Source: Isurus oxyrinchus
Lineage: Eukaryota
NCBI GenBank assembly: GCA_026770705.1
Contig: JANJGN010000150.1
Location: 248,001-312,000, forward strand
Direction: 5' to 3'
Length of the DNA: 64,000 nucleotides
Of this stretch, positions 12,095 to 34,639 are shown one piece after another. Under the pieces are notes generated by a model. It was not told the origin of the DNA. It searched no databases and saw nothing but the letters and a program-made list of their open reading frames with translations. Every line of letters begins with the position of its first letter. Within the stretch, counting starts at the first letter, position 1. Made by a program: the position numbers and the translations under genes.

Positions 12095-12545
12095 GTAAGT
12101 AACGGAACGATTGGAATTCACTTCCACCACCAACACCGTCCTTTGTTGATGTTGTGACTTTATAAAGACAGATTCCAATGATTGATGCCTTTGAAAGATT
12201 TCTTCTAATTATTGAGATCTGGGAGTGAGGCTCAAGTCTGTTGTACAGAACATCTTTCTAGCTCAAGAGATGAGGGAAGTGCAGGGACATGAGCTTTGGG
12301 GTGTCCTGAGGTGTTGAAAGGTGCTATAGAAATGCAAGTCCTTCAATGTTTTTCTTTCTTAAAGCCTTGTAACTCTCTGCAGAGCACCTATCATCCCACA
12401 GAGAATCAAATTAGATCCGTGAAGACATTGTCTAAAAGCAGTTCTGATCTCTCGAGAGCTGTCGGACAAGAGGTGAGGTCTCATTAACTCCTTTCTCTTT
12501 CAGAACTTCAGAGTTAGAAGCTGAGGAATTATCTGGGAGTGGACA

Positions 12546-12585
12546 ATGATCGGGAAATCTTACTTCCTCCTGTCACTTCTCCAAG
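12546..12585 (+). CDS. Gene A leader exon (MIGKSYFLLSLLQ)
   Basis: Acceptor ctttctctttcag ends 12503. ATG at 12546, hydrophobic run, phase-1 donor CAAG|GTAAT, matching the phase-1 V exon. Confidence 0.85.
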
Positions 12586-15500
12586 GTAATATTGTCAGCT
12601 CAAACAGATTTATGGCTAATAGTCTTTGTAAAAGATCATTCTTATTGAGCTGTGATTGGGAACCGATTCAGCAGTGAGCCAGTGTACAAACTCACACCAA
12701 GTCCCATTCACCCATCACCCCTGTGCTCACTGATATACACTGACTCCCTGTCTGACAGCAGAATTGGAGGAGAGCAGAGATCTCAGAGGGGTGAAGGGGC
12801 TGGATGAGGTTACAGAGGTAGGGACTGGAGAGGTGGTTGGGGGGATTGGGAATTGAGCATGAGAATCTTAAAATGGAGGCACTGCTTGACTGGGAGCCTA
12901 TGTAAGTCAGTGTGGATGGGGGGAAGGGTGGTAAAAGGTTGAGTAGAAAATCAGGGATAAAAACTGGAGGATGAAGTCTCTCCCTATGTTAGGTGTCTGA
13001 TAGCAATATCCTGAAATGTGTCTTTTGCTGATTTTATTCAGAATTTCCCATGAAGACAACACAGCAGCTCCTAGAATAGACAGGCTGTTCAGTGTCACAC
13101 TTCCTGTCCATTCTCACCTTGCTAGATACTTCAATAAGGGAGCAAGATAACTGATAGAGAGAAGGAAGGTAAAGCTGTCCGTGTGTAAAGGTGTCAATAT
13201 TCAGTTTGTATATTTGTCTTTCTCTCGACACATGCAGAGCTCAGGCTAGAGGCACTTTGTTAGTGTGTTTCACAGTGTCTGCTGGAGTAGGGTCAGTGCT
13301 GAGCTTGGGGACAAGTCAGTCTACAATGCTGCATCGGAATCAACAATACAACAATATGGGGTTTGGATCAGAAATAATCCCTTAGACAATGAGGATCCAA
13401 AGAGATTCCTTAAACAATGAGGATCCAAAGAGATTCCTTAAACAATGAGGATCCAACGAGATTCCTCAGACAATGAAGGTCCAAAGTGCACCAATCAGAT
13501 TGAATCAGATTAGCCAATCAGCTGTGTTGAAGAGCAGACAGGAATGTTAGGCTAATTAGTGATTCATGACGGTGATAATGGGGGAGTTCTGAGGGCTCCT
13601 AATCCATTGTCCTGTCTTGTAAATCAGCACTGAATGGATCTCAGTTGGTGTGTCTTGTAGACACTGTGTTGGGTCACATTTAATCATTGACATTAAAGTG
13701 ATAATTAGAGGCTGCATTTGGACTGAACATGAAGCTGTCACCAGGCCGCTTGAAATGAAGAATCCAAATGGTCCAGATGAGCAGAGAGCAATAGATTATA
13801 TTTACATAGCGCCTTAACTGTAAAAAAAAATCCAAGGGGCTACACAGGAGCATTATAATACAAGGCACAGTGACACTGTCTCACTGGCTTCACTAAACAG
13901 GGTCCTGAGGACCATGAGCCAATGTAGAATGAACTAGTCCACTCCTGTGTCCAGGACTCTCTTCCATCCATTGTGAAACCTTGGGGAGTACCTTGTGTGT
14001 CCTGTAGATGGTCCACACTGCAGCCACTGTGCCCCAGTGATGGAGGGGGTGGATATTGAGCCTAATGGATCTTCAAAACATCCAGAGTTAAATATTGATA
14101 TTTCTCTCCCCAGTTGGACTGTCACAAGAGTGGAAAGGTGACAGTCCACGAGAGGTGACAGCGCAGGAAGGTTCGTGTGTACAGATTCCATGTCATTACA
14201 GTTATCCATCACATTTGGAAAACCAACCGCGAGGTGGAGTCTGGTTTAATAATGAGAAACTGATTCCCTGGGCTCCCATTGCCTTTCACTCCAAGGATCA
14301 CAGTCACGAGTTACCACGGTTCCACCATCGGACCCGGCTGTCTGGAGACCTGAAAGATGGCGACTGTTCCCTGATTATAAACAGCATCAGACGGGAAGAT
14401 GCAGGACCTTATTTTTTCAGGATAGAATTTGACAATGGTCCGAGCCATAACTATTACCCTGTAACCCAGCTTCACGTTTCTGGTAAGTGCTGTGTTATAA
14501 TTACAAAACAATTCACATTCAACACTCAATGGGAAATAACACAAACTGTGACGTTTACATATTAACACAAAACACAGCTTAATATAACACACTGTCTGAT
14601 TCTCAATAACCTGGTGATAGCTTCCGGTTCAGTCCTAAAGCAACCTCTAATACTCACTTTAATATCAATAACGAAAAGCATTAACTGTATTATCAGGTTA
14701 CCACACCCATCAATCTCTCCTGTCCTGTTTAAAAGTCTGACGTATCGATAAAAGAAAGATGTGCATTTCTGCAGCGCAATTTACCACCTCAGGTGGATCC
14801 AAATCCCTTCACAGCCAATGAAATTATTCCTGAATTGTGGTCACAGATGTTAAACACAGCAGGCAGTTTGTGCACAGTAAGATCCAACAAACCACAAGGT
14901 GATAAATCACCCAGATCACTGAGGAAATGAGAAGCCAGTGAACTCAAACCTCTGGTCTGATGAAGAGTCATACGGACTCGAAACGTTAACCCTGTCTTCC
15001 TCTCCACTGATACTGTCAGACCTGCTGAGTCTTTCCAGCAATTTTTGTTTTGGTTTCAGATTTCCAGCATCCGCAGTATTCTGCTTTTAACTCCAATCTC
15101 TGGTCTGAGCCTCTTCTCTCATCCAGTATTCTCAATTCACATGTCTCGGAGTGAACGTGTATTAAGCTGAGAGACAGAAACACAACTGCCAAAGAGCAAG
15201 AAAATCTTTCCTGATCATTGTAACCTCTCAGTTCTGATATCATCCTTGTAAAAGTGCTTTCTCTTGTGGGACTGTGGTTTCTATTTGAACTGATGCTTCA
15301 CGTTATATTTCTCTAAAAAGATCCATTTTCTGTCTGTTAGATTTCACAGATAAACCCACGATATTCCCTGCGGAAATTATTGCAGGAAAGCGTGTGGATG
15401 TAAGCTGCACCTTCAACACAACGTGCAATGGAACAGCAGCACCTGTCTTAACCTGGGACACTCCCACTGACGTACCTGGATCAGTCTCAAACACTGTAAC

Positions 15501-18500
15501 TCAGCATGGTGTCACTCTGACCTATACTTCTGTTCTGACCCTGATCCCATCACTCAAACACCACGGACACACTCTCAGCTGCAGAGTGAGATATCCATCT
15601 GTTTCATCGGAGCGGACCCTCGTACTAACTGTGCAATGTAAGTACGGACACCCTTCATTCTACATTAGCTAGAACAGTGTAGATAATGCACAGCAGGATC
15701 CCATAGAAAGGTATTCTGATGAGAATCAGATAATCTGTTTTTTAGGGAAAATAGTGACCAGAACACAATTAATAACAGTTTCTGAACAGTAACACAGCGG
15801 CTTTTATTTCCAGCCAAGAGACCGATAGAGCAGAGCAGGAATCGCAATGTACTCACCCCCTGACAGTGCAGCACTCCCTCAGTACTGACCCTATGACAGT
15901 GCAGCACTCCCTCAGTACTGACCCTATGACAATGCAACACTCCCTCAGTACTGACCCTCTGACAGTCAGCACTCCCTCAGTACTGACCCTCCGACAGTGC
16001 AGCACTCCCTCAGTGCTGACCCTCTGACAGTGCAGCACTCCCTCAGTCCTGACCCACTGACAGTGCAACACTCCCTCAGTAATGACCCTTTGACAGTGCT
16101 GCTCTCCCTCAGTATTGCCTTTAAACTAAATAGATGGGGAGAGTGTTCTGGAGAGGGTATATGTAGGCTTACAAAGCAAAAGGATTTGCCAGCATTGCAG
16201 GATAGCTGTTTTGGTGATGATACCCAGTGTGTGACAGGTGGGTACACAGTGTCCAAACATTAAAATACATCAGCAAATAGAGTCAGAGGGAGGAAAATGA
16301 TAAAAAGACAAAATTAATGGCTCTTGACTTAAATGCACATAGTATTTGGAACAAAATAAATGAATTAAAGGCAAAAATAGAGGTTAATGGGTTTGATCTT
16401 ATAGCCATTATGGAGACATGGTTACAAGGAGATCAAAGCTTTGAAATAAATATTCAGGGGTATGTGTCTTTTCAAAAAGACAGGCAGGAAGGAAAGGTGG
16501 TGGGGTAGCTTTGTTAATAGGAGATGGAATAAGTACGAAAGCAAGAAATGATCTTGGATCGGAGGGTATAGAATCCATATGGCTCGAGGTAATGAATAAC
16601 AAGGGGAGGTAGGAACTGGTGGGAGTGGTCTATCAGCCCCATGACTGTAGCTCGGCTGTAGGACAGAGAATAAATCATGAGATAATGAGGGCATGTAAAA
16701 AAGGCAGTACATTAATCTTCATGTAGATTGGGAAAACCCAATTGGCAGAGGTAGCCATGAGCAAGAATTCATAGAGTGTATTCAAGACAGTTTCCTGGAA
16801 TAATATGTCGTGGATCTAACCAGGGATCAGGCTATTTTGGATCTGGTAATGTGTAATGAGGCAGGTTTCATACATGATCTCAGAATAAATGATCCCGTGG
16901 AAAACAGTGAACATAACCTGGTAGAATTTAGCATTCCCTCTGAGACTGAGAAACCTGGGTCGGAAACAACTGTGCTGGACTTAAATAAGTGTAATTACAA
17001 AGGAATAAGGACAGGGTTGTCAGGAGTGGACTGGGAAAGGGGTTTAGCAGAAAAGATGCTGGATGAACAAAGCAGATGTTTAAGAAAATAGCTCATGACT
17101 CACAACAACGATATATCCCAGTGAGAAAGAAGGATTGTAGGAAGAGAATAAACCAACCTGGGTTACCCAAAGAAGTTAAGGTGTGTGTCAAATTGAAAGA
17201 AAAAACATGCAGCACGACAAAGATTAGTGGTAAGCCAGAGGATTGAGAGAGTTTTAAAAACCAACAGAAGATGACCAAAAAATAAATAAAGAGGGAGAAA
17301 ACTAGGTAAACTAGCAATTGATATAAAAAAGGACAATAAAAGCTCCTTTAAATATATAAAAAGGGAGAGAGAGACCAAACTGTTCATAGGCCCCTTAGAG
17401 AACTAGGCTGGGGAAATAATAATGGGGAACCAGAAAATGACAGAGGAGTTGAATAAATACTTTGCATCAGTCTTCACGGTAGAACACACTAATATCATTC
17501 CAAAAATACTAAATAATCAAGGGGCAAAAGGGGGGTGGGGAGAGGAAATAAATACAATAACTATCACTAGAGAATAACGCTAGCGAAACTAATGGGTCTC
17601 AAGTCTGATAGGTCCCCTGGACCTGATAGGTTGCATCTTAGGATATTAAAGGAAGTAGATGCAGAGATAGTGGATGTACTGGTTTTAATCTTCCAAGAAT
17701 CCTTAGATTCTGGGAAACTCCCAGAGGATTGGAAATCTGCCAAAGTAACACCCATATTCAAAAAGGGAGGGAGACAACAAACAGGTAACTATAGGCCAGT
17801 TAGCTTAACATCTGTCATTGGGAACATGTTAGAGTCCATTATAAAGGATGTAATAGCAGACTATTTAGAAATGCATAATTTAAACAAACACAGGCTTCAT
17901 GAAGGGGAAATCATGCATGACAAATTTATTAGAATTCTTTGAGGAGGTAACAAACAGGATAGATAAAGGGGAACCAGTAGATGTAATATATTTGGATTTC
18001 CAAAAGGCATTCAGTAAAGTACCACATATAAGGCTACTTAATAAGATAAGAGCCCATGGTGTTGGGGGCAGTATATTAGCATGGATAGAGGATCGGCTAA
18101 CTAATAGAAGTCAGAGAGTTGGGATAAGGGGGGCATTTTCAGGATGGCAACCTGTGGATTGCCACACGGATCAGTGCTGGGGCCACAATTATTTACAATA
18201 TATATTAATGACTTGGATGAGGGAAATTAATGTACTATCGCCAAGTTTGCGGATGACACAAAAATAGATGGGAAGGCAAGCGGTGAGGGTGACACGAAGA
18301 GTCTACAGAGGGACATAGACAGGTTCAGTGAGTGGGCATCAACTTGGCAGATGGAATATAATGTGGGAAAATGTGAGCTGCTGCACTGTGGCAGGATGTA
18401 TAGAGGAGCTGAATATTATTTCAATGGAGAAAGACATTGGAAAGGTGAAGCATATTGGAATTTGGGGGTCATCAGAAAGATAACATACAAGTTCAGCAGT

Positions 18501-21500
18501 TAATAGGGAATGTTGGCCTTTATTTCAAAGGGAATGGAGTATAAAAATAGGGAAGTCATGCTAAAACTTTACAAGGCACTCGTTAGACCACACCTAGAAT
18601 ACTGTGAGCAGTTTTGGTTCCCTTATCTAAGGAAAGATGTACTGGCATTGGAGGCAGTCCAGAGAAGGTTCACTAGGTTGATCCCAGTAATGGAGGGATT
18701 TTCATATGAGGAGAGGTTGAGTAGGATGGGCCTGTACTCATTGGAGTTTAGGAGAATGAGAGCTGACCTTATTGAAACATATAAGATTCTTAGGGTGCTT
18801 GACAGGGTAGATGCTGAGAGGTTGTTTCCCCTTGTGGGAGAGTCTAGGACCAGAGGGCATGATCTCAGAGTAAGGGGTCACCCATTTAAGACAGAGATGA
18901 GGAGTTTCTTCTCTCAGAGGGTAGTGAATGTGTGGAATTCTTTACTGCAGAGAGCTGCAGAGGCTGGGTCATTAATTATATTCAAGGCTGAGATACACAG
19001 TTTTTTAATCAGTCAGGGAATCAAAAGCTATGGGAAAGTGGCAGGAAAATGGAGTTGAGGATTGTCAGATCAGCCATGGTGTCATTGAATGGCGGAGCAG
19101 AGTTGATTGGTCGAATGGCCTCCTTCTGCTCTGACGTCCTGTGGTCTTATGGTCTTATCACCCTCCGACAGTGCAGATCTCCCTAATTACTGACCCTCCA
19201 ACAGTGCAGCACTCCCTCAGTACTGACCCTCTGGCAGTGCAGCATTCCCTAAGTATTGACCCTCCAACAGTGCAGCACTCCCTCAGTACTGACCCTCCAA
19301 CAGTGCAGAGCTCCCTAATTACTGACCCTCCGACAGTGCAGCACTCCCTCAGTACTGACCCTCCGACAGTGCAGCATTCCCTAAGTACTGACCCTCCGAG
19401 AGTGCAGCACTCTTCCAGTACTGGCCCTCCAACAGTGCAACACTCCCCTAGTACTGACCCTCCAACAGTGCAGCACTCCCTCAGTACTGACCCTCCAACA
19501 GTGCAGCACTCCCTCAGTACTGACCCTCTGACAGTGCACCACTCCATCAGTACTGACCCTCCGACAGTGCAGCACTCCCTCAGTACTGATCTTCCAACAG
19601 TGCAGCAGTCCATCAGTACTGACCCTCCGACAGTGCACCACTCCCTGAGTCCTGATCCTCCAACAGTGCAGCACTCCCTCAGTACTGATCCTCCAACAGT
19701 TCAGCACTCCCTCAGTACTGATTCTCTGACAGTGAAGTACTTGCTCAGTACTGACTATGCGGCAGTGCAGCTTTCACAGTACTTGCCCTCCAACAGTGCA
19801 GCAGGTCATCAGTACTCACGCGCCAAGAGGGCAGCTCTCCCTCAGTACTGACCCTCCCACAGTGCAGCACTACCTCAGTACTGACCCTCCAACAGTGCAG
19901 CACACCATCAGTACTGACCCTCCAACAATACAGCACTCCCTCAGTACTGAACTGAAGTGTCTGCCTGAATTAAGTGCTTTGTGGTGAAGGAACCTACATT
20001 GATATCACACCTTTCACATTCTCAGGGTCCCTCTTCAGTACTGACCCTCTGACAGTGCAGCATTGCTTCAGTACTGACTCTCTTACAGTGCAGCACTCCC
20101 TCAGTACTGACCCTCTGACAGTGCAGCACTCCCTCAGTACTGATCCTCCGACAGTGCAGCATTCCCTAAGTACTGACCCTCCGAGAGTGCAGCACTCTTC
20201 CAGTACTGGCCCTCCAACAGTGCAACACTCCCCTAGTACTGACCCTCCAACAGTGCAGCACTCCCTCAGTACTGACCCTCCAACAGTGCAGCACTCCCTC
20301 AGTACTGACCCTCTGAAAGTGCACCACTCCATCAGTACTGACCCTCCGACAGTGCAGCACTCCCTCAGTACTGATCTTCCAACAGTGCAGCAGTCCATCA
20401 GTACTGACCCTCCGACAGTGCACCACTCCCTCAGTCCTGATCCTCCAACAGTGCAGCACTCCCTCAGTACTGACCCTCCAACAGTGCAGCACTCCATCAG
20501 TACTGACCCTCCAACAATACAGCACTCCCTCAGTACTGAACTGAAGTGTCTGCCTGAATTAAGTGCTTTGTGGTGAAGGAACCTACATTGATATCACACC
20601 TTTCACATTCTCAGGGTCCCTCTTCAGTACTGACCCTCTGACAGTGCAGCATTGCTTCAGTACTGACTCTCTTACAGTGCAGCACTCCCTCAGTACTGAC
20701 CCTCTGACAGTGCAGCACTCCCTCAATACTGACCCTCTGACAGTGCAGCATTGCTTCAGTACTGACCCTCTGACAGTGCAGCACTCCCTCAGTACTGACC
20801 CTCTGACAGTGCAGCACTCCCTCAGTACTGACCCTCTGACAGTGCAGCACTCCCTCAGTACTGACCCTCTGACAGTGCAGCACTCCCTCAGTACTGACCC
20901 TCTGACAGTGCAGCACTCCCTCAGTACTGACCCTCTGACAGTGCAGCACTCCCTCAGTACTGACCCTCTGACAGTGCAGCACTCCCTCAGTACTGACCCT
21001 CTGACAGTGCAGCACTCCCTCAGTACTGACCCTCTGACAGTGCAGCACTCCCTCAATACTGACCCTCTGACAGTGCAGCACTCCCTCAGTACTGACCCTC
21101 TGACAGTGCAGCACTCCCTCAGTACTGACCCTCTGACAATGCAGCACTCCCTCAGTACTGACCCTCTGACAGTGCAGCACTCCCTCAGTACTGACCCTCT
21201 GACAGTGCAGCACTCCCTCAGTACTGACCCTCTGACAGTGCAGCACTCCCTCAGTACTGACCCTCTGACAGTGCAGCACTCCCTCAATACTGACCCTCTG
21301 ACAGTGCAGCACTCCCTCAGTACTGACCCTCTGACAGTGCAGCACTCCCTCAGTACTGACCCTCTGACAGTGCAGCACTCCCTCAGTACTGACCCTCTGA
21401 CAGTGCAGCACTCCCTCAGTACTGACCCTCTGACAGTGCAGCACTCCCTCAGTACTGACCCTCTGACAGTGCAGCACTCCCTCAATACTGACCCTCTGAC

Positions 21501-24500
21501 AGTGCAGCACTCCCTCAGTACTGACCCTCTGACAGTGCAGCACTCCCTCAGTACTGACCCTCTGACAGTGCAGCACTCCCTCAGTACTGACCCTCTGACA
21601 GTGCAGCACTCCCTCAGTACTGACCCTCTGACAGTGCAGCACTCCCTCAGTACTGACCCTCTGACAGTGCAGCACTCCCTCAGTACTGACCCTCTGACAG
21701 TGCAGCACTCCCTCAGTACTGACCCTCTGACAGTGCAGCACTCCCTCAGTACTGACCCTCTGACAGTGCAGCACTCCCTCAGTACTGACCCTCTGACAGT
21801 GCAGCACTCCCTCAGTACTGACCCTCTGACAGTGCAGCACTCCCTCAGTACTGACCCTCTGACACTGCAGCACTCCCTCAGTACTGACCCTCTGACAGTG
21901 CAGCACCTCTTCAGTACAGGGTCCTGAATCTTTGGAAGTCTCTCCTTAATCCTTGGGTGTGGAGGATCTGAGAGACTCTCATGTAATTGAGAAGTCACCA
22001 TGAGCACAGCAGCAGTCAGAATAGACAGATCTACAACCCAACACTCACACTTGCTGCACAGTTTCACCACCAAACCACAAGAATTAAGCAAACTGGCTGA
22101 AAATAAAGAGATGACAATTCAGCCTGTGTGGAAAGGTCAGAAGTTTATTGTTTCCTGTTTGTCTCTGATCTGCAGCGCAGATAAATATTAGAAAACCACA
22201 GAATCAAACAGCACAGAAAGAGGCCACTCAGCCCATTGTCCCTGTCCTGGTCTCCTGGGACAGATATCCAATTGGTCCCAATCTCCCATTCTCTCACACT
22301 CTGCAAGTATTTTGAAAGATCCTATTGAATCTGCTTCCACCGCCCTTTCAGGCAGCACCTTCCAGATCACAGCAACTCGCTGTGTACAATAAAACCTAAC
22401 CTGCCTGCTCAGTGATGGTTACTCCCATCTGAGGGGATTTATATTCATGAATTTGGATTCAATCTGGGACAGGAAGAATTTGAAGGACGATGGGGGAAGA
22501 GAGGTGGATTGAAACCAATTGTGTGCTTCCTTTAAAGAGCTAGCACAGCCAAGATGGCATGAATGGCCTCCTGCTGTTCCGTGTGATTCTGTGATATGAT
22601 GAAGAAAGTTCCTTTTCAGCAACAGTTTACCTCTTCTGCTGAAACTCTTCATGTTGGAGAAGAGGAAGTGATGGTTTCCATCAGCGTTTGTGTTCCAGTT
22701 CAGTTTTAACCGAAACTCAGTGAAGCGGATGGTGAAGGTCATGAACCCACCACAGGGGCACCTCCGACACATGCAGAGCTCAGGCTAGAGGCACTTTGTT
22801 AGTGTGTTTCACAGGGTCTGCTGGGGTAGGGTCAGTGCTGAGCTTGGGGACAAGTCAGTCTACAATGCTGCATCGGAATCAACAATACAACAATATGGGG
22901 TTTGGATCGAAATAATTTGATCCTGTGACAGTGCAGCACTCCCTCAGTACTGATTCTCCAACAGTGCAGGACTCCCTCAGTACTGACCCTCTGACAGTGC
23001 AGCACTCCCTCAGTACTGACCCTCTGACAGTGTGTGTTCCAGTTCAGTTTTAACCGAAACTCAGTGAAGCGGTCCTGATCCTCCAACAGTGCAGCACTCC
23101 CTCAGTACTGATTCTCTGACAGTGAAGTACTTGCTCAGTACTGACTATGCGGCAGTGCAGCTTTCACAGTACCTGCCCTCCAACAGTGCAGCAGGTCATC
23201 AGTACTCACGCGCCAAGAGGGCAGCTCTCCCTCAGTACTGACCCTCCCAAAGTGCAGCACTACCTCAGTACTGACCCTCCAACAGTGCAGCACTCCATCA
23301 GTACTGACCCTCCAACAATACAGCACTCCCTCAGTACTGAACTGAAGTGTCTGCCTGAATTAAGTGCTTTGTGGTGAAGGAACCGACATTGATATCACAC
23401 CTTTCACATTCTCAGGGTGTCTCAAAGCGTTTCACAGTCAATGTAAGTAACTGATCTTTATTTGTTTTCAGACACACCACAGAATCTCTCAATTAATTCT
23501 CTTGATATGATTAACGCTTCATCGATCAATATAATTGAGGGGAATTCTGCGGTGATAATCTGCTCTGTCGAGAGCTTCCCAGCTTCTAACCTGACGTGGC
23601 GACATCTTAATGTCCCAATGAACAGAACAAGTTCCAACAATGAGCTGTGGCTGGTGATTCCTCACGTTACATCCAGGGACACTGGAGACTATCAGTGTGT
23701 GGCAGAGAATGAACATGGAGCAGTGGAGGGGTTCATAACCATCACTGTGGAACGTGAGTTACACAGAATTGAACGTTCTCTTGTTGTTAGCTCATGGGAT
23801 GTGGGCATTGTTGACAAGACCAGAAATTATTGCCCATCTGTAACTGCCCCTTGAGAAGGTGGTGGTGAGCTGCCTTCTTTAACCACTACATTCCCTGTGG
23901 TGTAGGTACACCCACAGTGCTGTTAGGGAGGGAGTTCCAGGATTTTGTCCCAGTGATGGTGAAAGAACGGCCAATATATTTCCAAGTCCCAGGGCAGACC
24001 ACCACCTCAAGTTCGCTTCCAAATCACACACCTCACTGACTTGGAACTGTCTTGGTGGAAGAGGTTAAGAGTTTGGAAGGTGCTGTCGAAGGAGCCTTGG
24101 TGAGTTGCTGCAGTGCATCTTGTAGATGGTTCACACACTGCTGCCATTGTGTGCCAGTGGTGGAGGGTATGAATGTTTATGCTGGTGGATGGGCTGTCGA
24201 TCAAACAAGCTGCTCCTGGATGGTGTCGAGCTTCTTGAGTGTTGTTGGAGCTGCACTTATTCAGGCAATTGGAGATTATTCCATCACACTCCTGACTTGT
24301 GCCTTGTCGATGGTGGACAGGCTTTGGGGGGTCAGGAGGTGAGTTACTCACCGCAGAGTTCCCAGCCTCTGACCCGCACTTGTAGCCACATTATTTCCTG
24401 TTGCTGGGTTGTTGCCAGGGCCAATAGCCTTTGCTGTATCCAGTATCATCAGCTGATTGCTGATGTCACGTGGAGTCAATCGAATTGTCTGAAAGCTGAC

Positions 24501-27246
24501 ATCTGTGATGCTGGGACCCTCTGGAGGAGGCCGAGATGGAGCATCCACTCAGCACTTCTGGCTGAACATGGTTGCCAATGCTTCAGCCTTGTCGTTTGCA
24601 CTGATGTGCTGAGCTCCCCCATCATTAAGGATGGGGATATTTGTGGAACATCCTCCTCCTGTTAGATCTTTAATTGTCCATCACCATTCATGACTGGATG
24701 TGGCAGGACTGCAGAGCTTAGATCTGACCCGTTGGTTGTGGGATCGCTTTGCTCTGTCTATAGCATGTTGTTTCCGCTGTTTGGTGTGTATGTAGTCCTG
24801 TGTGTCACCTCAGCAGCTTGGCACCTCTGTTATATGTGAATCCTCCTTATAGAAACCTGCATGTACATGGATATTATCAATAAATATTACATAGATAAAT
24901 GTTATTTGTATAGACCTTTCATGCATAGACAATATCACTTCACAAGTTCAGAATTACTACATGTACGTAGGGAACCATTCTCAAACTGTACCGGAGTCAT
25001 TCATTGGCTGATTTTACAGGGCGAGATTCAAATGAATGGAAAGCAGGATTGCTTGGAGCTGGAATCTGTTTGAGTGTTGGACTGAGTGGATTCTTCATTT
25101 TCAAGTGTGTGAGAAAGTAAGTGTGAAGGTTTAATTGGTTGTTTTTGAAAATGTTTTCTTCAAACTTCTCTCCTTATAGAAAGAACTTGCATTTCTATAG
25201 CACCTTTCACAACCCAGAACCCTTCACAGCCCCTGAAGAGTTTTGATTTTCACCTACTGTTTAACATCTCATCCAACATTCACTGTTTCACAACTCAGTC
25301 CTGCAACTGGCAGTGTTGACCCGGACCATAAGATACCTTGTGACCTACTGAGGATGTGAAAGGAGCTATATAAATGAAAACCTTTCTTTTGTTAGTGAAT
25401 GCAATCTCTTTCCTTTTTCCATGTTTCATTCACTCTCTCTTATCTCCACTAATGCTCTCCTTCTCATTCTCTCTCTCATTCACTCTCTCTCCAATCTCCA
25501 CTAATGCTCTCCTTCTCATTCTCTCTCTCGTCCTCTTACACGTTGTTCAGTCTCTCACATTTTTAAGGAGCGCTGAGCAACATCTGCTCCTTCAGAAGAT
25601 CCACCTCAACAGCTGGATTGAGCAGTGAATTGAAACGCGCTCAACGACTGCTCAGCTTTACACAGGAATCACGTCACAGAGTCAGGACACAAAGGGTTAA
25701 CAGTTTGTTTACAACACAACACTAAGGCCCTACGTTTCAGTGAAAGGGTTTTCACAATTGTTCCCCAATTCCTGATTTGATTCACAGAGACACATCAACC
25801 CTTTCTCATTAAACATACAGAGGGAGCAGCACAGGAAGAGGTCATTCAGCCCAAGCAGAGCGGGAGGGCAGTTCCTCCCCAGGCGAGCAGTCGGACAGGT
25901 ACTGGGTAAGTAACGGAACGATTGGAATTCACTTCCACCACCAACACCGTCCTTTGTTAATGTTGTGACTTTATAAAGACAGATTCCAATGATTGATGCC
26001 TTTGGAAGATTTCTACTGATTATTGAGATCTGGGTGTGAGGCTCAAGTCTGTTGTACAGAACATCTTTCTGGTTAAATTATGCAGACAGGTTACACACAG
26101 TCTACGATTATATTCACTCGGGTCTAGAAGATTAAGGAGGGATCTAATTGAGGGGTTCAAAATGATTAAACACTCGATAGGGTCGATAGAGAGAAGCTAT
26201 TCCCTCGGGTGGGGGTGAGGGTGGGGGTCGGGTGGAGTCCAGAACAAGGGGGCTGGAACTTCAGATTGGAGCCAGGCCGTTCAGGGGTGATGTCAGGAAG
26301 CACTTCTTCACACAAATGGGAGTGGAAATCTGGAACTCTCTCCCCAATAATCAAACCCAACACCGAATACACATCATGTTGATAGTCACTCTCTCCATTT
26401 CCATCTCTATTACAGAAGAGAGGCGAGGGGAAAGCAGGAATCAAATCGAACCATCGTGTTGATGAATATCGAGGTCCTGTTTATGAAAACTGTGAGCGTG
26501 GTTGGGCTTTGAGGCATCAGGTGAGTCACACACCACAGGATCCCCAGCCTCTCAGCTGCTCCAGTAGCCTGGTTATTGATATGGCTGCTCCAGTCCTGTA
26601 TCTGCAATGTTTTATACAGTCACTCCCAAACCCAACCAAACTCACACCCAACACCATTCAGAATCAATAATCAAACCCCGATCAGAATCAATAATCAAAC
26701 CCCGTTCAGAATCAATAATCAAACCCCGATCAGAATCAATAATCAAACCCCGTTCAGAATCAATAATCAAACCTCGTTCAGTATCAATAATCAAACCCCA
26801 TTCAGAATCAATAATCAATCCCCATTCAGTTTCAATAATCAAACGCCGTTCAGAATCAATAATCAAACCCCGTTCAGAATCAATAATCAAACCCCGTTCA
26901 GATTCAATAATCAAACTCCGTTCAGTATCAATAATCAAACCCCGTTCATTATCAATAATCAAACTCCGTTCATTATCAATAATCAAACACCGTTCAGTAT
27001 CAATAATCAAACCCCGTTCAGTATCAATAATTAATGTATCTATTGTGGGTGGAATTTTCGATTTGGATCAATAATACTAAACACTGATCACTCTGATTGT
27101 CACTCTGATCATTTCTGTTTCTATTACAGCAGAAAGATGAGAAGGATCTGGAAATGAAATCTAACCGCGGAGTCAATCCTGATACAGATGATGATCTTTA
27201 CGCAAACTGTGATTTTGCCAAGGATTCTGTTTATGGGAATTTATAA
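12546..27246 (+). CDS. Gene A: Siglec-like (CD33-related/CD22/MAG family) type I receptor, leader-V-C2-C2-TM-cytoplasmic tail, 8 coding exons, 463 aa
   Basis: Exons 12546-12585, 14114-14482, 15341-15637, 23472-23753, 25020-25116, 25821-25905, 26416-26520, 27130-27246. All have AG/GT boundaries and compatible phases (1,1,1,1,2,0,0). Total 1392 nt = 463 aa + stop. The ectodomain and TM are well supported; the two middle tail exons less so. Confidence 0.8.
13379..13485 (+). repeat. 28-bp tandem repeat (ccttaaacaatgaggatccaaagagatt), about 4 copies
   Basis: Direct periodicity; only the first unit is present in gene B. Confidence 0.85.
14114..14482 (+). CDS. Gene A V-set Ig exon (sialic-acid-binding type)
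   Basis: Siglec hallmarks: N-terminal Trp (QEW), GSCVQIPC, GDCSL and DAGPYFFRIE with the essential Arg. 369 bp, phase 1-1. Confidence 0.95.
14957..14990 (+). ncRNA. Minimal hammerhead ribozyme motif in a Penelope-like fragment (about 14950-15090)
   Basis: CTGATGA-A-GAGTC-atacg-GACTC-GAAACGTT: conserved core, perfect 5-bp stem II, palindromic AACGTT in place of helix III. Confidence 0.6.
15341..15637 (+). CDS. Gene A first C2-set Ig exon
   Basis: DFTDKPTIF..SCTFNTTC..LTW..SVLTLIP..LSCRV. The extra Cys is typical of the Siglec V-C2 interdomain disulfide. 297 bp, phase 1-1. Confidence 0.93.
15850..16115 (+). repeat. 33-bp satellite, short array
   Basis: About 8 tandem units. Confidence 0.9.
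16270..19158 (+). mobile_element. Near-complete degenerate CR1-type LINE ORF2 (AP endonuclease + RT) in a gene A intron
   Basis: LNAHSIWNK..IMETWL, ILDLVMCN, SPGPD, PIFKKG..NYRPVSLTS, YLDFQKAF, FADDT, RPHLEYC. Tail ends in a tggtctta repeat. Frameshifted. Confidence 0.95.
19159..21920 (+). repeat. 33-bp satellite: diverged block, internal duplication of about 590 bp, then homogeneous array
   Basis: Tandem units. The spacer aactgaagtgtctgcctg..ttctcaggg recurs at about 19950, 20540 and 23340. Confidence 0.97.
22925..23340 (+). repeat. 33-bp satellite remnant
   Basis: Tandem units duplicating about 19655-19950. Confidence 0.85.
23472..23753 (+). CDS. Gene A second C2/I-set Ig exon
   Basis: YTPQNLSI..EGNSAVIICSVESFPASNLTW..DTGDYQCVAENEHG. 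ttttcag acceptor, c|gtgagt donor. 282 bp, phase 1-1. Confidence 0.93.
23790..24830 (-). mobile_element. Rearranged CR1/L2-clade LINE fragments (RT and 3' end)
   Basis: Homologous to 38010-39780 and 59795-60240; LDTAKAIGP and AGQRLGTLR motifs. Confidence 0.8.
25020..25116 (+). CDS. Gene A transmembrane exon (uncharged TM)
   Basis: RRDSNEWKAGLLGAGICLSVGLSGFFIFKCVRK. ttttacag acceptor, aa|gtaagt donor, phase 1-2. Confidence 0.88.
25821..25905 (+). CDS. Gene A candidate first cytoplasmic exon (GSSTGRGHSAQAEREGSSSPGEQSDRYW)
   Basis: 85 bp, phase 2-0, open, strong tgg|gtaagt donor. It is the only good bridge I found between the TM exon and the phase-0 tail exons. The same sequence occurs as the 5' exon module elsewhere. 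Confidence 0.5.
26416..26520 (+). CDS. Gene A cytoplasmic exon with VYENC motif
   Basis: KRGEGKAGIKSNHRVDEYRGPVYENCERGWALRHQ. ctattacag acceptor, cag|gtgagt donor. Resembles the terminal exon. Confidence 0.65.
26655..27030 (+). repeat. 24-bp minisatellite (aatcaaaccccgttcagaatcaat), about 16 copies
   Basis: Direct periodicity; 8-aa periodic ORFs. Confidence 0.95.
27130..27246 (+). CDS. Gene A terminal cytoplasmic exon (..DTDDDLYANCDFAKDSVYGNL*)
   Basis: ctattacag acceptor. Open to TAA. Frame and both Tyr are kept in the paralogous exon at 6582-6698. Confidence 0.8.
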   Translation, partial: QKDEKDLEMKSNRGVNPDTDDDLYANCDFAKDSVYGNL

Positions 27247-28366
27247 ACTGAGCAAGAATGAGACACACACAGTGTGGGGAGAATACAGAACGGGAGAATC
27301 ATTCAAAACTCCAATTTACCTTCCTAATATCCACAGGAACTCACTCCCAGGAAATAGATTTAAACCTCTTGTTACAATCTGATGGAATTTCTTCGGAATG
27401 ATCTATCCAGGATGATTGTCTGTGGGTTTCAATTCGAACATCCTCCTTCAGATTTGTCCCTCACTGTTGGAAACATACTTCTCTCCAATCTGATTGTAAA
27501 TGTCTTTAGATATCGTTCGATGATGTACCAGGACAGAACGGACAAATTCAATCCCGTGTCCATGATTATGAGTTAATTTTCATTCTGTTATTCACCTTCC
27601 TGTCTGTCAGTGTTTACAGAATATTCATCAGCCAGTGTAGACTTCAGGAAATGCAGGATCGGTGGATAATTGGAGCAGAGGAGATTGTTAAAATTTACTC
27701 ACCATTTTGTAGTCAAAAGTATTTTCAGATATATATTTGGATTTTACACTTCATCGTTAAAGAGCAAAACTAACAGCAATCCCGGAAACAGGGAAACAAT
27801 TTGATTGGAGATTTGAGAAATTCTCTGCAGCTCAGAGGATAACAGATGTGCTACAGTGCCACCACTGGTGGCAGGACATCATTTCAGCGTGACATGTTTA
27901 CATTGATGTTGCCAATGAACATTGGAAATTATGATGTGAAAAATTGGTTGCAGGTTTACCTTCTTCAATATGTCATGGATGGATGAGACAGCTTTGATAA
28001 CAGAATGAGACAGAGCTGCAATAAACCACCATTTTAGTCTTTCACACTTGGAGAGTACAATGAGCATCCATCCTGAAGGCTGAGTGGATGGGTGGACTGT
28101 GCGATGTGTTACAGATTACAGAGACCAACATCCTTGATCCTGGTTCTGCTCTGTGTTTGATGAGATGCTTGGATAAAAGATTGGGAAAATAAATAATCCT
28201 CCTGCATTAACCTGTAACTGGTCTCTCCTTCTGTCAATGTCGTGAGGAGACAATTGGGTTTGAGGTCCAAAATCAGACATTCTTTGACTGCCAATTGAAT
28301 AGGAACAGGAGGAGGCCATTCAGCCCCCTCGAGCCTGCTACACGGGAACAAGAGGGCACCTGATAC

Positions 28367-28575
28367 AAAAACAGAAAATGCTGGAGAAACTGAGTAGGTC
28401 TGGCAGCATCTGTGGAGAGATAAACAGAATTAACATTTCGAGTCCGTATGACCCTTCTTCAGAGTCTATAAGCAAAAACTCTGTTTCTCTCTCCACAGCT
28501 GCTGCCAGACCTGCTGAGTTAATGCAGCATTTTCTGTTTTTATTTCAGATTTACAGCATCTGCAGTATTTATTTT
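28367..28575. mobile_element. Penelope-like inverted-repeat (hairpin) fragment with a minus-strand hammerhead motif at 28430-28462
   Basis: Arms aaaaacagaaaatgctg..ctgtggagaga and tctctccacag..cagcattttctgttttt. Minus strand reads CTGAAGA-A-GGGTC-atacg-GACTC-GAAATGTT. Confidence 0.65.
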
Positions 28576-28579
28576 TAAT

Positions 28580-29640
28580 GACAGGAGGACATTCAGCCTC
28601 TTGATCCTGTTACACAGGAACAGCAGGAGGCCATTCAGCCCCCTCGAGCCTGTTACACAGGAACAGGAGGAGGCCCATTCAGCCCCCTCGAGCTTGTTAC
28701 ACAGCAAGAGGAGGAGGTCCATTCAGCTACTCAAGCCTATTACACAGGAACAGGATTAGGACAATACAGCCCCTCAAGCCTGTTACACAGGAACAGGAGG
28801 AGGCCCATTCATTCCCTCAAGCCTGTTACACAGGAACAGGAGGAGGACCATTCAGCCACTCAAGCCTCTTACATGAGGACAGGAGAAAGCCCATCAGCCT
28901 CTTGAGCCTATTATACAGGAACAGGAAAAGGACATTCAGTCCCTCAACACCCTTCCACAGGAACAGGAGAGACTCTCAGCCCCTCGAGCCTGTTACCCAG
29001 GAACAGGAAGAGCACATTCAGTCTCTCAACCCACTTACACAGGAATAGGAAACCCATTCAGTCACTCGTGACTGTTACACAGGAACAGGAGGAGGCCCAT
29101 TCAGGCCCCTCGAGCCTGTTACACAGGAACAGGAGGAGGCCCATTCTGTCCCCTTGAGCCTGTTACACAGGTACAGGAGACCCATTCAGCCTCCACAAGC
29201 TTGTTACACAGGAACATTAGGGGCTCCATTCAGCCCCATCAAGCCTGTTACACAGGAACAGGAGGAGGCCATTCAGCCCCTCGAGCCTGTTACACAGGAA
29301 CAGGAGGAGGCCCATTCAGCCCCTCAAGCCTGTTACACAGGAACAGGAGGAGGCCCATTCAGCCACTCAAGCCTGTTACACAGGAACAGGTGGAGGCCCA
29401 TTCAGACCCTCTAACCTGTAACACAGGAACACAAGGAGATCCATTCAGCCCCTCGAGCCTGTTACACAGGAACAGGAGGAGGCCTATTCGGACACTCGAG
29501 CCTGTTACACAAGGACAGGGGGAGGGCATTCAGCACCTGGAGCCTGTTACACAGGAACAGGAGGAGGTCCATTCAGCTACTCACACCTGTTACACAGGAA
29601 CAGGAAGAGGCCCAGTCAACCCCTCGAGCTTGTTGCATGT
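28580..29640 (+). repeat. About 43-bp minisatellite array
   Basis: Same unit as 7790-8475, more diverged. Confidence 0.95.
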
Positions 29641-29674
29641 GAGCAGTCGATGGCCCTTCAACCACATTCTTGGC

Positions 29675-29879
29675 ACGCAAAGGGCTAACAGTTTTCTAAC
29701 AGTGCGAGGCAAAGAGCTGCTTTCACACTTGGTACCAAGCACTTCCAATTTTGTCTCACAGAGACACATCCACCCTTTCTAATTAAACACAAATAGGGAG
29801 CAGCACAGGAAGAGGTCATTCAGCCCAAGCAGAGCGTGTGGGCAGTTCCTCCCCAGGCGAGCAGTCGGACAGGTCCTGG
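29675..29879 (+). promoter_or_regulatory. Putative promoter and non-coding exon 1 of gene C
   Basis: Copy of the 11895-12094 module, followed by the same intron and a leader exon. Confidence 0.55.
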
Positions 29880-30307
29880 GTAAGTAACGGAACGACTGGA
29901 ATTCACTTCCACCACCAACACCGTCCTTTGTTGATGTTGTGACTTTATAAAGACAGATTCCAATGATTGATGCCTTTGAAAGATTTCTACTGATTATTGA
30001 GATCTGGGTGTGAGACTCAAGTCTGTTGTACAGAACATCTTTCTAGCTCAAGGGATGAGGGAAGTGCAGAGACATGAGCTTTGGGGTGTCCTGAGGTGGT
30101 GAAAGGTGCTATAGAAATGCAAATCCTTCATTGTTTGTCTTACTTAAAGACTTGTAACTCTCTGCAGAGCACCTATCATCCCACAGAGAATGAAATTAGT
30201 CTGTGAAGGCATTGTCTAAAAGCAGTTCTGATCTCTCGAGAGCTGTCGGACAAGAGCTGAGGTCTCATTAACTCCTTTCTCTTTCACAGCTTGAGAGTGA
30301 GAAGTGG

Positions 30308-30368
30308 ATGGAATATCTGGGAGTGGACGATGGTCGGGAAATCTACTTCCTCCTGTCACTTCTCCAAG
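30308..30368 (+). CDS. Gene C leader exon (MEYLGVDDGREIYFLLSLLQ from an upstream ATG)
   Basis: The ATG homologous to gene A's (30330) is out of frame after a 1-bp deletion (aaatctac vs aaatcttac). ATG 30308 is in frame with YFLLSLLQ and the phase-1 donor. Confidence 0.55.
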
Positions 30369-31060
30369 GTAATATCATCATCAGCTCGAACAGATTTATG
30401 TTTAACAGTCTTTGTAAAAGATCATTCTTATCTCTTTATCTCTGTAACCTCCTGCAACTCACCCAAACAACTTCCCAGATCTCTGTGTTACTCCAATTCC
30501 GGCCTCTTGACCATCCCCCGATTCCCATCACTCCAATACTGGCGGCCGTGCCTTCAGCTGCCTGGGGCCTGAGCTCTGGAATTCACTCCCTAAACCTCGG
30601 GGATGGAGGAGATCAGAGGGTTTCATTTTACTGACAATCACCACGACAACATCACAGCTGCAGTCAGAATAGACAGAGAGTCCAGCCCTCACACTTCCTG
30701 CACAGTTTCACCATAGCAACCACAATAAAGAAGTAAAATAACTGAAAGTTAAACCGAAGCCAAACCAGTCGGTGTAGAGAGATGAGATGTTTACACAGTT
30801 TCCCTGTGTATCTTGTAGACACTGTGTTGGGTGGAAGACTGGCTTCACTAAACATGGTCCTGAGGACCATGAGCCAATGTAGAATGAACTTGTCCACTCC
30901 TGTGACCAGGATTCTCTTCCATCCATTGTGAAACCTTGGGGAGTTCCTTGTGAGTCCTGTAGATGGTCCACACAGCAGCCACTGTGCCCCAGTGATGGAG
31001 GGAGTGGATATCAAGTCTAGTGGATTGACAAACCATCCAGAGTTAAATATTGACATTTCT

Positions 31061-31090
31061 ATTACCCTGTAACCCGGCTTCATGTTTCTG
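31061..31090 (+). pseudogene. 3' remnant of the gene C V exon
   Basis: Junction tttct|attaccctg removes the acceptor and about 345 bp relative to gene A; donor retained. Confidence 0.9.
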
Positions 31091-31565
31091 GTAAGTGCTG
31101 CGTTATAATTACTCAACAATTCACATTCAACACTCAATGGGAAATAACACTAACTGTGACGTTTACATATTAACACAAAACACAGCTTAATATAACACAC
31201 TGTCTGATTCTCAATAACCTGGTGATAGCTTCCAGTTCAGTCCTAAAGCAACCTCTAATACTCACTTTAATATCAATGATGAAAAGCATTAACTGTATTA
31301 TCAGGTTATCCACTCCCATCAATCTCTCCTGTCCTGTTTAAAAGTCTGACGTATCGATAAAAGAAAGATGTGCATTTCTGCAGCGCAATTTACCACCTCA
31401 GGAGGATCCAAATCCCTTCACAGCCAATGAAATTATTCCTGAATTGTAGTCACAGATGTTAAACACAGCAGGCAGTTTGTGCACAGCAAGATCCAACAAA
31501 CCACAAGGTGATAAATCACCCAGATCACTGAGGAAATGAGAGGCCAGTGAACCCTAACCTCTGGT

Positions 31566-31599
31566 CTGATGAAGAGTCATACGGACTCGAAACGTTAAC
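31566..31599 (+). ncRNA. Minimal hammerhead ribozyme motif (paralog of 14957-14990)
   Basis: Identical CTGATGA..GAAACGTT core and stem II. Confidence 0.6.
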
Positions 31600-31949
31600 C
31601 CTGTCTTCCTCTCCACTGATACTGTCAGACCTGCTGAGCCTTTCCAGCAATTTTTGTTTTTGTTTCAGATTTCCAGCATCTGCAGTATTCTGCTTTTAAC
31701 TCCAATCTCTGGTCTGAGCCTCTTCTCTCATCCAGTGTTCTCAATTCACATGTCTCGGAGTGAACGTGTATTAAGCTGAGAGACAGAAACACTACTGCCA
31801 AAGAGCAAGAAAATCTTTCCTGATCATTGTAACCTCTCAGATCTGATATCATCCTTGTAAAAGTGCTTTCTCTTGTGGGACTGTGATTTCTATTTGAACT
31901 GATGCTTCACGTTATATTTCTCTAAAAGGATCCATTTTCTGTCTGTTAG

Positions 31950-32246
31950 AATTCACAGATAAACCCATGATATTCCCTGCTGAAATTATTGCAGGAAAGC
32001 GTGTGGATGTAAGCTGCACCTTCAACACAACGTGCAATGGAACAGCAGCACCTGTCTTAACCTGGGACACTCCCACTGACGTCCCTGGATCAGTCTCAAA
32101 CACTGTAACTCAGCATGGTGTCACTCTGACCTATACTTCTGTTCTGACCCTGATCCCATCACTCAAACACCACGGACACACTCTCAGCTGCAGAGTGAGA
32201 TATCCATCTGTTTCATCGGAGCGGACCCTCGTACTAACTGTGCAAG
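31950..32246 (+). CDS. Gene C first C2-set exon, intact
   Basis: 297 bp, near-identical to 15341-15637, AG/GT intact. Confidence 0.85.
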
Positions 32247-32570
32247 GTAATTACATGCACCATTCATTCTACATCAGCACTCCCTCAGCGCTGACCCTCT
32301 GACAGTGCAGCCCGTTCTCAGTATCCACATTCTCATGCCTCTCAAAGTGCTTCACAGTCGATAGAAGTTAATTGATCTTTATATGATTATTGCTGAATGA
32401 AGAGACAAGCTGTCTAAAGTTTACATCTCGCACACACCATTCTCCATGGCAACACCGCCACCTATCAGAGACCACTGGCCAACCAATCAGCACTCTCTTC
32501 CCATTAAGTATAAATTGTTGTTCACTTTCTGTTGGTAATCCTGTGAACGGGGTTCTTGATTCCCTCCCTG

Positions 32571-32722
32571 ACATCTTAATGTCCCAATGAACAGAACAAG
32601 TTCCAACAATGAGCTGTGGTTTGTGATTCCTCACGTTACATCCAGGGACACTGGAGACTATCAGTATGTGGCAGAGAATGAACATGGAGCAGTGGAGGGA
32701 TTCATAATCATCACTGTGGAAC
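32571..32722 (+). pseudogene. 3' half of the gene C second C2 exon
   Basis: The 5' half and acceptor are replaced by about 190 bp of unrelated sequence. The F-strand Cys is mutated (DYQYV). Confidence 0.88.
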
Positions 32723-34400
32723 GTGAGTGTACACAGACTTCAACATCTCTCTCAGATTCGAACACTACACAAACACCCTCAAACATACACATCTAAGTAG
32801 ACACATGCAGACACACATATATGACCACACAGAAAGACACACTCACACACAAACACACTAACACACACTCCCCTGTGGGCTACCTGACCTCCCTCAGTAC
32901 TGCCCTGGAGAGTTGGCCTGAATTCTGGGATTTGTGTTCCCATTCATATTTATGCAAGAATATGGAAATTACAAAGTCTATTACAGACAGTCAGATGCAT
33001 AGAGACACTCACAGATACTCTCTGCCTCTCCAACTCTCTCTCTCCCTTTAAGAAGCTTCCTGAAAGCTCACCCTTCGAACAATCACCGGTCCCAAATCCT
33101 CCTTATCTGATTTGTGTGATTTTCTTTGTGTATTTGAGAGTAAGCGAGAGGTGGAGAGGTTTAGGAGGAGAATTCCTGTTGGTGAAAAGCTTACATCATG
33201 TTCTCACCTTTCCAGTGCCCATATTTTACATGATGTCCAATGTCCTTGTTCATAATGGGAATTGCCTATGTAAACATCACGCTGTAGTTACAGTCTCCTA
33301 CCAGTGGTGGCATTGTAGCACTTAATCCTTGTGTTTCCCAGCTTTTCAAGCAACTCCACTTCCCAGTTTGCTCCACAAGCTGTGAGTTCATTGGAATTCA
33401 ATTATTTCTCAAACGGTAGATTTGATGTCATTTTATTGAAAACTTCCTCAGTGCCTCCCTGAAGGGTTGACACTCTCTGGGAAGCAGGAATAGGCTGGAT
33501 GTTGGGGAGTTCATCTTTTCCCAAAGAGTAGTGATCCTCGGGAATGTGCTGTCAGTGGGTGTGGTGGTTGCTGATTCTCTGTCGCCTTCAAGAGGGATCT
33601 GGAGTCATTACTGACTGGGGGAGAGATCATGGAAACGGAGAATGATACAGCACAGGAGGAGGCCATTCAGTCCATTGTGCCTGTGCCAGGTCTTTCAATG
33701 TTCTATCCAATCAGATCCAATAACCACCATTCCAATTTGCCACCATCTTCCTCCTTTAAGTATTTATCCAATTTCCCTTTTGAAAGTTCCTATTGAATCT
33801 GCTTCCACCGCCCTTTCAGGCAGCACCTTCCAGATCACAACAACTCGCTCTGTCAAAACAAATTCTCCTCATCTCCCCCTTCGGTTCGTCAATCTGTGTC
33901 CCTCTGGTTACCGAGCCTCCTGCCCCTTAAGTACATTGATACTGTTCACCTCAACCACTCCCTGTGGGAGCGAGTTCCACATTCTCCCCTCTCTCTGGGT
34001 AAAGATTGGAACTGTTTATTAAGTGAGGCCTGTAAGTCCGTGGGGGAGTCCATCTCGATCCTGCCCGATTCGTACACGCGTCCGAGATGGATTTCCACCC
34101 TGCACTAAACGTTTCCAGAATTTTCTACAGCACAATCCTGTACACAACGATTGGGAGAAACATTGGACAGGGAGTCCAACAGCACAATGATCCATTCTCA
34201 CCAATGTTCCACGCTAAGGGGAAAGTTCCGATTGTCCACTCTTAGAGTGTTTACAATGAAAACATTCATTCCACATTGAATCCCAGTGGATGGGTCAATA
34301 TTACAGCAAATGTTGCAGTGATATGAAGCTTGATTGTTCAGCCAGAGTGAGAGATTGAAAGCGGAGAGTCAGTGATGATTTCTTTCTGTGTGTTCTCTAG

Positions 34401-34540
34401 ACAGTGGAGGAGAGATTCTGCACGTGATCCTGATCCTGGGAATACGAGCTGTGATATTCCTTGTGGCTGTGGTTATCACTATCGCTGGAGTCTGTGTCTG
34501 GGAGAGACAAACAGTGAAAGCAAGTCGACAGACTGTTTGA
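34401..34540 (+). CDS. TM + short-tail terminal exon with an intramembrane Arg (activating-receptor type)
   Basis: ttctctag acceptor, phase 1. Reads SGGEILHVILILGIRAVIFLVAVVITIAGVCVWERQTVKASRQTV*. Arg codon at 34445-34447; no Tyr in the tail. Confidence 0.82.
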
Positions 34541-34639
34541 AGCTTTGTACAGCAACAATCTGGTCAGTCAGTGCGGACAAATAACGTGTGATGTTGGGTT
34601 AAGTTGTAATGAAACTGGTCAGTGTCCTGGTTAGAATCA

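Follow-up and report, generated by a model that had tools for sequence, protein, structure and literature searches.

Descriptions of paired Siglecs present them as a mammalian and largely primate defence against pathogens with sialic-acid mimicry, and to our knowledge every characterised receptor that combines a basic transmembrane (TM) residue with a short tail uses an adaptor. Paired receptors are defined by similar ectodomains with opposite 3' ends (PMC6288428). The basic TM residue docks to an acidic pair in the adaptor, with an arginine near the top of the TM segment leading to FcR-gamma or zeta and a central lysine leading to DAP12 (PMC13107469). Here we describe a Siglec-like locus in a 64,000-nt stretch of Isurus oxyrinchus contig JANJGN010000150.1 (hereafter, the window), which is vertebrate DNA with many fragments of long interspersed nuclear elements (LINEs) and 33-bp minisatellites. 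The locus includes a gene ending in a tail with tyrosine motifs (gene A) and its tandem copy (gene C), which leads to an exon encoding an arginine-bearing TM segment (the Arg-TM exon, or anchor). We consider it likely that the locus represents a lamniform Siglec-like cluster in which one ectodomain type is provided with two alternative 3' ends, gene C being a decayed copy with a putative activating Arg-TM anchor.

Gene A (12546-27246) has a V-C2-C2 ectodomain, followed by an uncharged TM segment and a Tyr-motif tail. Its exon bounds were set by splice signals and homologous models; spliced models were searched one exon at a time, and junctions were computed as three-letter codons. The N-terminal V-set domain is of the Siglec type according to both Pfam and its closest relatives among the solved structures, namely Siglec-5, CD33, Siglec-8, Siglec-7, and MAG (E-values of ~1e-14 to 2e-15). 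The candidate sialic-acid-contacting arginine of strand F, placed by motif position, is found as YFFRIEF in gene A, in its inverted partial copy (gene B), and in models P0013, P0014, P0016, and P0017 (homologous protein models are cited here by their P numbers). In two Arg-TM models this arginine is replaced, by Ser in P0002 of S. torazame (YHFSIEF) and by Lys in P0004 of C. punctatum (YYFKVEF).

Gene C (30308-34540) has its promoter, leader, introns, and C2 exons in common with gene A, at 92-98% identity. Over the first C2 exon (C2a), the two genes are 98.3% identical in nucleotides and 100% identical in the 92 aa compared, and their introns are 97% identical, so that highly similar ectodomain exons lie in neighbouring genes, with the V exon of gene C itself being gone. 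The identity crosses the donor of the second C2 exon (C2b; GAAC/GTGAGT, the slash marking the exon border) and ends approximately 25 nt 3' of this donor in the alignment of the C2b region, which gives the locus a clear recombination breakpoint. A first-pass annotation of the window had proposed this near-identity of promoter, leader, introns, and C2 exons with divergence after the second C2 donor, an uncharged TM segment and Tyr-motif tail for gene A, and an arginine TM segment with a Tyr-free tail of roughly 12 residues for gene C. Self-BLAST and alignment agree on the first point, and the exons collected in Table 1 bear out both endings.

The Arg-TM exon is single-copy in the window, is preceded by a strong acceptor with a long pyrimidine tract and AG (ttctttctgtgtgttctctag), and is in phase 1, as are all the Ig exons. 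Its 45-aa peptide (...ILGIRAVIF...) comprises a TM helix and a 12-residue tail without Tyr or signalling motifs, the arginine being approximately the 8th residue of the 26-residue TM segment, i.e., in its upper third. A basic TM residue with a short motif-free tail, a feature of paired receptors, is thus present in this exon. Among 1.84 billion representative proteins, a search with the anchor peptide yielded ten matches at a cut-off of E<=0.001 (E from 5e-13 to 2.5e-4), none of them to a non-shark protein. Nine matches are shark proteins with the cassette, while in the tenth (P0009) the motif is absent. Under their source names, the nine are three proteins of S. torazame (CD33-like, Siglec-12, and one hypothetical protein), Siglec-13 and a CD22-like protein of C. 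punctatum, a CD22-like protein of H. ocellatum, a sialoadhesin-like protein of R. typus with the V domain only, Siglec-11 of C. plagiosum (a fused model with the cassette internal), and a SLAM family 9-like protein of M. asterias; the models are automatic RefSeq predictions. The anchor aligns with the exact protein C-terminus in eight of these nine. A second search added the great white shark models P0013 and P0014 (V-V-C2a-anchor) and P0017 (V-C2a-anchor), as well as the S. canicula models P0016 and P0018, as cassette carriers.

Conservation of the arginine had been set as a check in advance, and the motif ILGIRAxIF did not vary among the 15 models compared, which represent 8 shark species and always have a short, Tyr-free tail. 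Pfam gave nothing meaningful for the 45-aa anchor itself, and it assigned different types of ectodomain to the cassette-bearing models. Since the peptide matches the exact C-termini of shark models and its motif is invariant, the exon is, judging by these comparisons, real and far from a chance open reading frame (ORF); and since the ectodomains of the models differ in type, it is a conserved shark terminal cassette common to at least three families of Ig receptors (Siglec-, CD22-, and SLAM-like). Assignment of the exon to a separate downstream gene was considered and rejected, as the plus strand has no further Ig or tail exons up to 58.9 kb and the Arg-TM exon is exactly where the matching proteins stop. 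The Siglec-like model P0039 of the stingray Hypanus sabinus ends in another Arg-TM anchor that resembles this one, ISLAVRGVLF followed by a tail of 8 residues.

The pairing of one ectodomain type with opposite 3' ends becomes apparent from the V domains. Gene A shares 96% V-domain identity with the Arg-TM model P0013, 93% with P0014, and 92.5% with P0017, but only 70% with P0027, a great white shark Siglec-like model that has a Tyr tail and a TM segment 96.7% identical to that of gene A. In the maximum-likelihood tree of V domains, genes A and B, the great white shark Arg-TM models, and P0016 of S. canicula form one clade (support 95/94), with P0027 and the other Tyr-tail models outside it. 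Near-identical V domains on Tyr-tail and Arg-TM genes match the definition of paired receptors given above (PMC6288428), and the paired Siglec-like system that had been postulated for this shark is upheld by the clade and by the 92-96% V identity. Intact Arg-TM partners of A-type ectodomains evidently exist elsewhere, as P0013, P0014, and P0017 of the great white shark indicate. Great white shark RefSeq Siglec-like models match the Ig exons of the window at 89-99% identity and basking shark models match them at 91-95%, which marks the window as lamniform DNA. A 100% match to an Ig-domain or anchor exon of the window occurs in none of the great white shark models, their only exact match being an exon-1 peptide of 18-19 residues.

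Gene C, the putative activating member, had been thought to be damaged in the window, and four lesions make the damage heavier than was implied. A 1-nt deletion just 3' of the canonical ATG puts MVGK out of frame, whereas the upstream ATG (30308) re-enters the YFLLSLLQ frame. A deletion of approximately 345 bp has removed the V acceptor and the V exon except its last 31 nt. The C2a-C2b intron, which measures 7.8 kb in gene A, has shrunk to approximately 0.15 kb with one or two minisatellite units left, and approximately 170 nt of unrelated sequence (32397-32569) with three in-frame stops stand in place of the C2b acceptor and the 5' half of C2b. Lastly, the second Ig Cys is now Tyr. To judge from these lesions, gene C is in the present assembly a decaying copy, and its product could at most be a V-less protein with one Ig domain. 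Exon 1 of the family is read in two frames (12530-12586 and 30308-30368), MIGKSYFLLSLLQ being the leader and MEYLGVDNDREILLPPVTSPR the N-terminus of P0023 and P0026, which the N-termini of P0005 and P0006 also resemble; the 1-nt deletion of gene C fuses both frames.

Splicing of the Arg-TM exon to Ig exons, the other check set in advance, is seen both in RefSeq models and in contigs. Great white shark models join C2a to the cassette with the junction TVQ/D/SGGE, and catshark models also splice Ig exons to it. Contigs came from four runs with transcriptome-sized contig sets, whose RNA nature is presumed, and were placed on positions 30100-35000 at >=93% likeness. A GT..AG joint from 32244/6 to 34399/401 occurs in three runs from two organisms, with sides of 21-27 nt. 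It reads ...CAAG/AC..., i.e., Asp (G+AC), as in gene C and in P0013, P0014, and P0017, whereas the T of gene A at the same junction base would give Tyr. Another GT..AG joint, from 32722 to 34401, is found in one 674-nt contig (32464-32722 plus 34401-34810) with 255 nt on its shorter side. This contig includes the replacement sequence of gene C (32464-32569) and reaches 34810, so that the transcript with exon 34401 extends as a 3' untranslated region to at least 34810. A-type exons and the spliced Arg-TM form occur in the same presumed-RNA runs, with paralogues mixed, and unspliced contigs also span 34401. The homologue search with the C2b exon of gene A returned ITIM-tail (immunoreceptor tyrosine-based inhibitory motif) or partial models only, and a lamniform fragment joining C2b to Arg-TM was absent from it. 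We read these data as a receptor family that splices either C2a or C2b to the Arg-TM exon.

Several observations weigh against a cluster of Tyr-tail and Arg-TM partners with gene C as its decayed member. The A-type base accounts for nearly the whole depth at the C-specific positions 32083 and 32622, so the joints mostly document paralogues rather than gene C. In three of the four joint records the sides measure just 21-27 nt, and the contigs were placed at the likeness of >=93% from runs that are guessed to be RNA. Between the 674-nt contig and the window there are 43 differing letters and, at 34429, a gap of 1 nt, which assigns the contig to a related locus or species rather than to the exact locus of the window. 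The tail of gene A, finally, contains YxN motifs and a single ITIM-fitting motif instead of a classical pair of an ITIM and an immunoreceptor tyrosine-based switch motif (ITSM): among YENC, YANC, and the C-terminal SVYGNL, only the last fits the ITIM consensus (S/I/V/L)xYxx(I/V/L). A role of gene A in phosphotyrosine signalling is likely, and this role is possibly inhibitory.

In the mechanism we propose, gene A would link its V-C2-C2 ectodomain through the uncharged TM segment to a Tyr-motif tail signalling via phosphotyrosine, and the Arg-TM exon is one copy of a shark cassette used by several families of Ig receptors. The partner of the TM arginine would be the aspartate pair of an adaptor dimer with immunoreceptor tyrosine-based activation motifs (ITAMs), of either the FcR-gamma/CD3-zeta type or DAP12, and through this docking the binding of a ligand would trigger activation. 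We infer the coupling of the shark anchor to an ITAM adaptor by analogy, because known receptors of the same build act so. A centrally placed lysine, as in the DAP12 rule, is not what the anchor has, its residue being an arginine in the upper third of the TM segment. Siglec-14 uses an arginine with DAP12, and this precedent keeps DAP12 among the candidate partners; with the arginine in an intermediate position, the sequence does not tell which adaptor is used.

The intact exons of gene C could be taken to form a working V-less receptor (leader, C2a, Arg-TM) that serves as an adaptor-binding subunit or a decoy. All three exons are of phase 1-1 with junctions in frame, the upstream ATG at 30308 together with the 1-nt deletion yields MEYLGVDDGREIYFLLSLLQ with the YFLLSLLQ frame restored, a V-less great white shark model exists (P0001), and the C2a-TM joint has the C-type G. 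We nevertheless regard this as improbable, since four independent lesions within 4 kb resemble decay, and in the hybrid signal peptide the N-region is acidic and the hydrophobic core spans just 8 residues; moreover, the G junction is also present in intact paralogues, so that the joints are no proof of gene C expression, and a non-C base appears in nearly all of the depth at 32083. Use of the Arg-TM exon as an alternative 3' terminal exon of gene A, by read-through over the relic Ig exons of gene C, is very improbable. The exon does lie on the same strand, 10.6 kb downstream of the C2b exon of gene A, and with all Ig exons of phase 1-1 the junction from the C2a of gene A would read Tyr, as in S. 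canicula P0016 and C. punctatum P0004; however, the observed joints have G (Asp) and not the T of gene A, gene C owns a copy of the promoter and leader, and the great white shark Arg-TM models are on other contigs with V exons of their own.

The arginine itself might have another purpose, such as retention or quality control in the endoplasmic reticulum, pairing with another receptor chain, or shedding, in which case the pair would not be one of activating versus inhibitory members. Its position is neither that of the arginine at the top of the TM segment, as in CD89 with FcR-gamma, nor that of the central lysine of the DAP12 rule (PMC13107469). On the other hand, ILGIRAxIF is strictly kept in 8 species and at least three receptor families, always with a short motif-free tail, and the characterised receptors of the same build are established to use an adaptor in all cases, which makes these alternatives quite improbable. 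Compared with them, a Siglec-like cluster with one ectodomain type and two 3' ends is the reading that we prefer.

Table 1. Positions of Siglec-like exons, remnants, and internal repeats in the window
Feature	Positions	Strand	Remarks
Gene A, leader exon	12546-12585	+	MIGKSYFLLSLLQ, phase 1 donor; leader common to RefSeq models P0016, P0018, P0027
Gene A, V-set exon, Siglec type	14114-14482	+	carries YFFRIEF arginine; Pfam V-set 1e-10, Ig_CD22 1.9e-8
Gene A, first C2 exon (C2a)	15341-15637	+	Pfam C2-set_2 3.3e-9
Gene A, second C2 exon (C2b)	23472-23753	+	Pfam Ig_3 8e-13; 90% identical to P0022 of S. canicula
Gene A, uncharged TM exon	25020-25116	+	SNEWKAGLLGAGICLSVGLSGFFIFKCVRK / AGLLGAGICLSVGLSGFFIF; 96.7% identity to TM of great white shark Tyr-tail model P0027
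Gene A, cytoplasmic exon	~25819-25905	+	tblastn against P0025 and P0027
Gene A, cytoplasmic exon with YENC	~26416-26526	+	tblastn against P0025 and P0027
Gene A, last cytoplasmic exon with YANC, SVYGNL, and stop	~27130-27246	+	tblastn against P0025 and P0027
Gene C, promoter and leader region	29740-30431	+	ATGs at 30308 and 30330, exon end 30368; 93.5% identity to A
Gene C, V-exon remnant	31060-31090	+	last 31 nt and donor; from aligning all three genes (A, B, and C)
Gene C, C2a exon, intact	31950-32246	+	5/298 nt differ from A
Gene C, C2b remnant	32570-32722	+	second half only, second Ig Cys replaced by Tyr
Arg-TM terminal coding exon	34401-34540	+	phase 1; SGGEILHVILILGIRAVIFLVAVVITIAGVCVW-ERQTVKASRQTV-stop, TGA at 34538
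Self-BLAST match	A 11954-12645, C 29740-30431		93.5%
Self-BLAST match	A 13883-14105, C 30838-31060		92.4%
Self-BLAST match	A 14451-15669, C 31059-32278		97.0%
Self-BLAST match	A 23601-23781, C 32570-32752		94.5%
Gene B, inverted copy of 5' part of A	481-2496	-	leader ~1972-1913, V exon 1047-682; 88% nt identity to A
Orphan copy of last tail exon of A	6579-6695	+	YANC...SVYGNL; 88% aa identity
Copies of ~85-bp cytoplasmic exon (five)	8601-8693, 12008-12094, 25819-25905, 29796-29879 (+); 2404-2496 (-)	+/-	SSTGRGHSAQAE...
Other Siglec-like gene type, TM and tail exons	58952-59221, 60302-60514, 61888-62151	+	LLYANP...TEYAQIRF; 74-83% identity to great white shark CD33-like P0023
Divergent Siglec-like V-set exon	45229-44933	-	~30-32% identity to V of A; Pfam V-set 2.5e-4

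Other Siglec-like pieces of the window are listed in the same table. The V domain of gene B is 96-97% identical to that of the great white shark Arg-TM model P0013, and the 3' end of gene B is outside the window. One copy of the ~85-bp cytoplasmic exon is located approximately 0.5 kb upstream of each leader, and from this placement the duplication unit seems to start inside the tail of the preceding gene. The distal motif TEYAQIRF of the other gene type resembles the ITIM-like motif TEYSEI/V of CD33-related mammalian Siglecs. Within the 7.8-kb C2a-C2b intron of gene A, the stretch 15846-23340 holds a LINE reverse-transcriptase fragment (16317-19058) and long arrays of the 33-bp minisatellite; these arrays, also present at 8784-10424, contain uninterrupted ORFs of 400-500 aa in more than one frame.

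Models with the cassette are already present in automatic annotation, and we found no paper that describes them, nor any paper on Siglec pairs of sharks or elasmobranchs or on their adaptors; the whale shark genome paper just lists Siglecs among the Ig families. The same design in sharks, with matching ectodomains, a Tyr tail versus a buried arginine, and a decayed putative activating copy, would date the paired-Siglec strategy, invented once or repeatedly, back to the base of the jawed vertebrates. The locus would then serve as an example of the loss of an activating member, and the compact conserved anchor as a handle on which ITAM adaptor cartilaginous fishes use. More speculatively, and with rather low confidence, ILGIRAxIF can be viewed as an old elasmobranch activating module, perhaps extending to rays (ISLAVRGVLF in P0039), that was exon-shuffled among Siglec-, CD22-, and SLAM-like genes, with gene C being a presence/absence allele like SIGLEC14-null and SIGLEC16P. 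If so, sialic-acid receptors evolving as 'counter-traps' under pressure from pathogens would be typical of vertebrates in general and not peculiar to mammals.

In its overall build, the anchor is similar to those of receptors coupled to FcR-gamma/zeta through a TM arginine (CD89, NKp46, and NKp30) or to DAP12 through a central lysine (KIR2DS, TREM2, and Siglec-15), all of which have one basic TM residue and a very short tail; the shark arginine, at approximately residue 8 of the 26-residue TM segment, is intermediate between them, and no sequence homology to them was detected. Homology of the shark anchor to the mammalian Siglec-14/15/16 anchors was likewise not detectable, and the lack of any non-shark anchor match at E<=0.001 favours our guess that the shark anchor is probably of independent origin. 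The shark RefSeq models of C. carcharias (Siglec-12 P0013/P0014 and CD33-like P0017) and S. canicula (Siglec-14 X2 P0016 and Siglec-13 P0018) have V and C2a exons at 89-99% identity to those of the window, the Arg-TM cassette at 89-93.5% identity, and the same junction from C2a to the TM segment. These models are intact V-(V)-C2a-TM forms, whereas gene C is without a V exon, has the C2b remnant, and is matched exactly by no model. The human pairs Siglec-5/Siglec-14 and Siglec-11/Siglec-16, which come closest among the described systems, differ from the shark one in having a tail with an ITIM and an ITIM-like motif, as opposed to the YxN motifs and one ITIM-fitting motif of gene A, and the shark anchor is a cassette that is also found in CD22-like and SLAM-like receptors. 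In other respects the human pairs are alike: their N-terminal Ig domains are near-identical, one member has a Tyr-motif tail and the other a short tail after a basic TM residue, the members are neighbouring genes of one cluster, and null or pseudogene alleles are common for the activating member, SIGLEC16P being named as the pseudogene form (PMC5701461).

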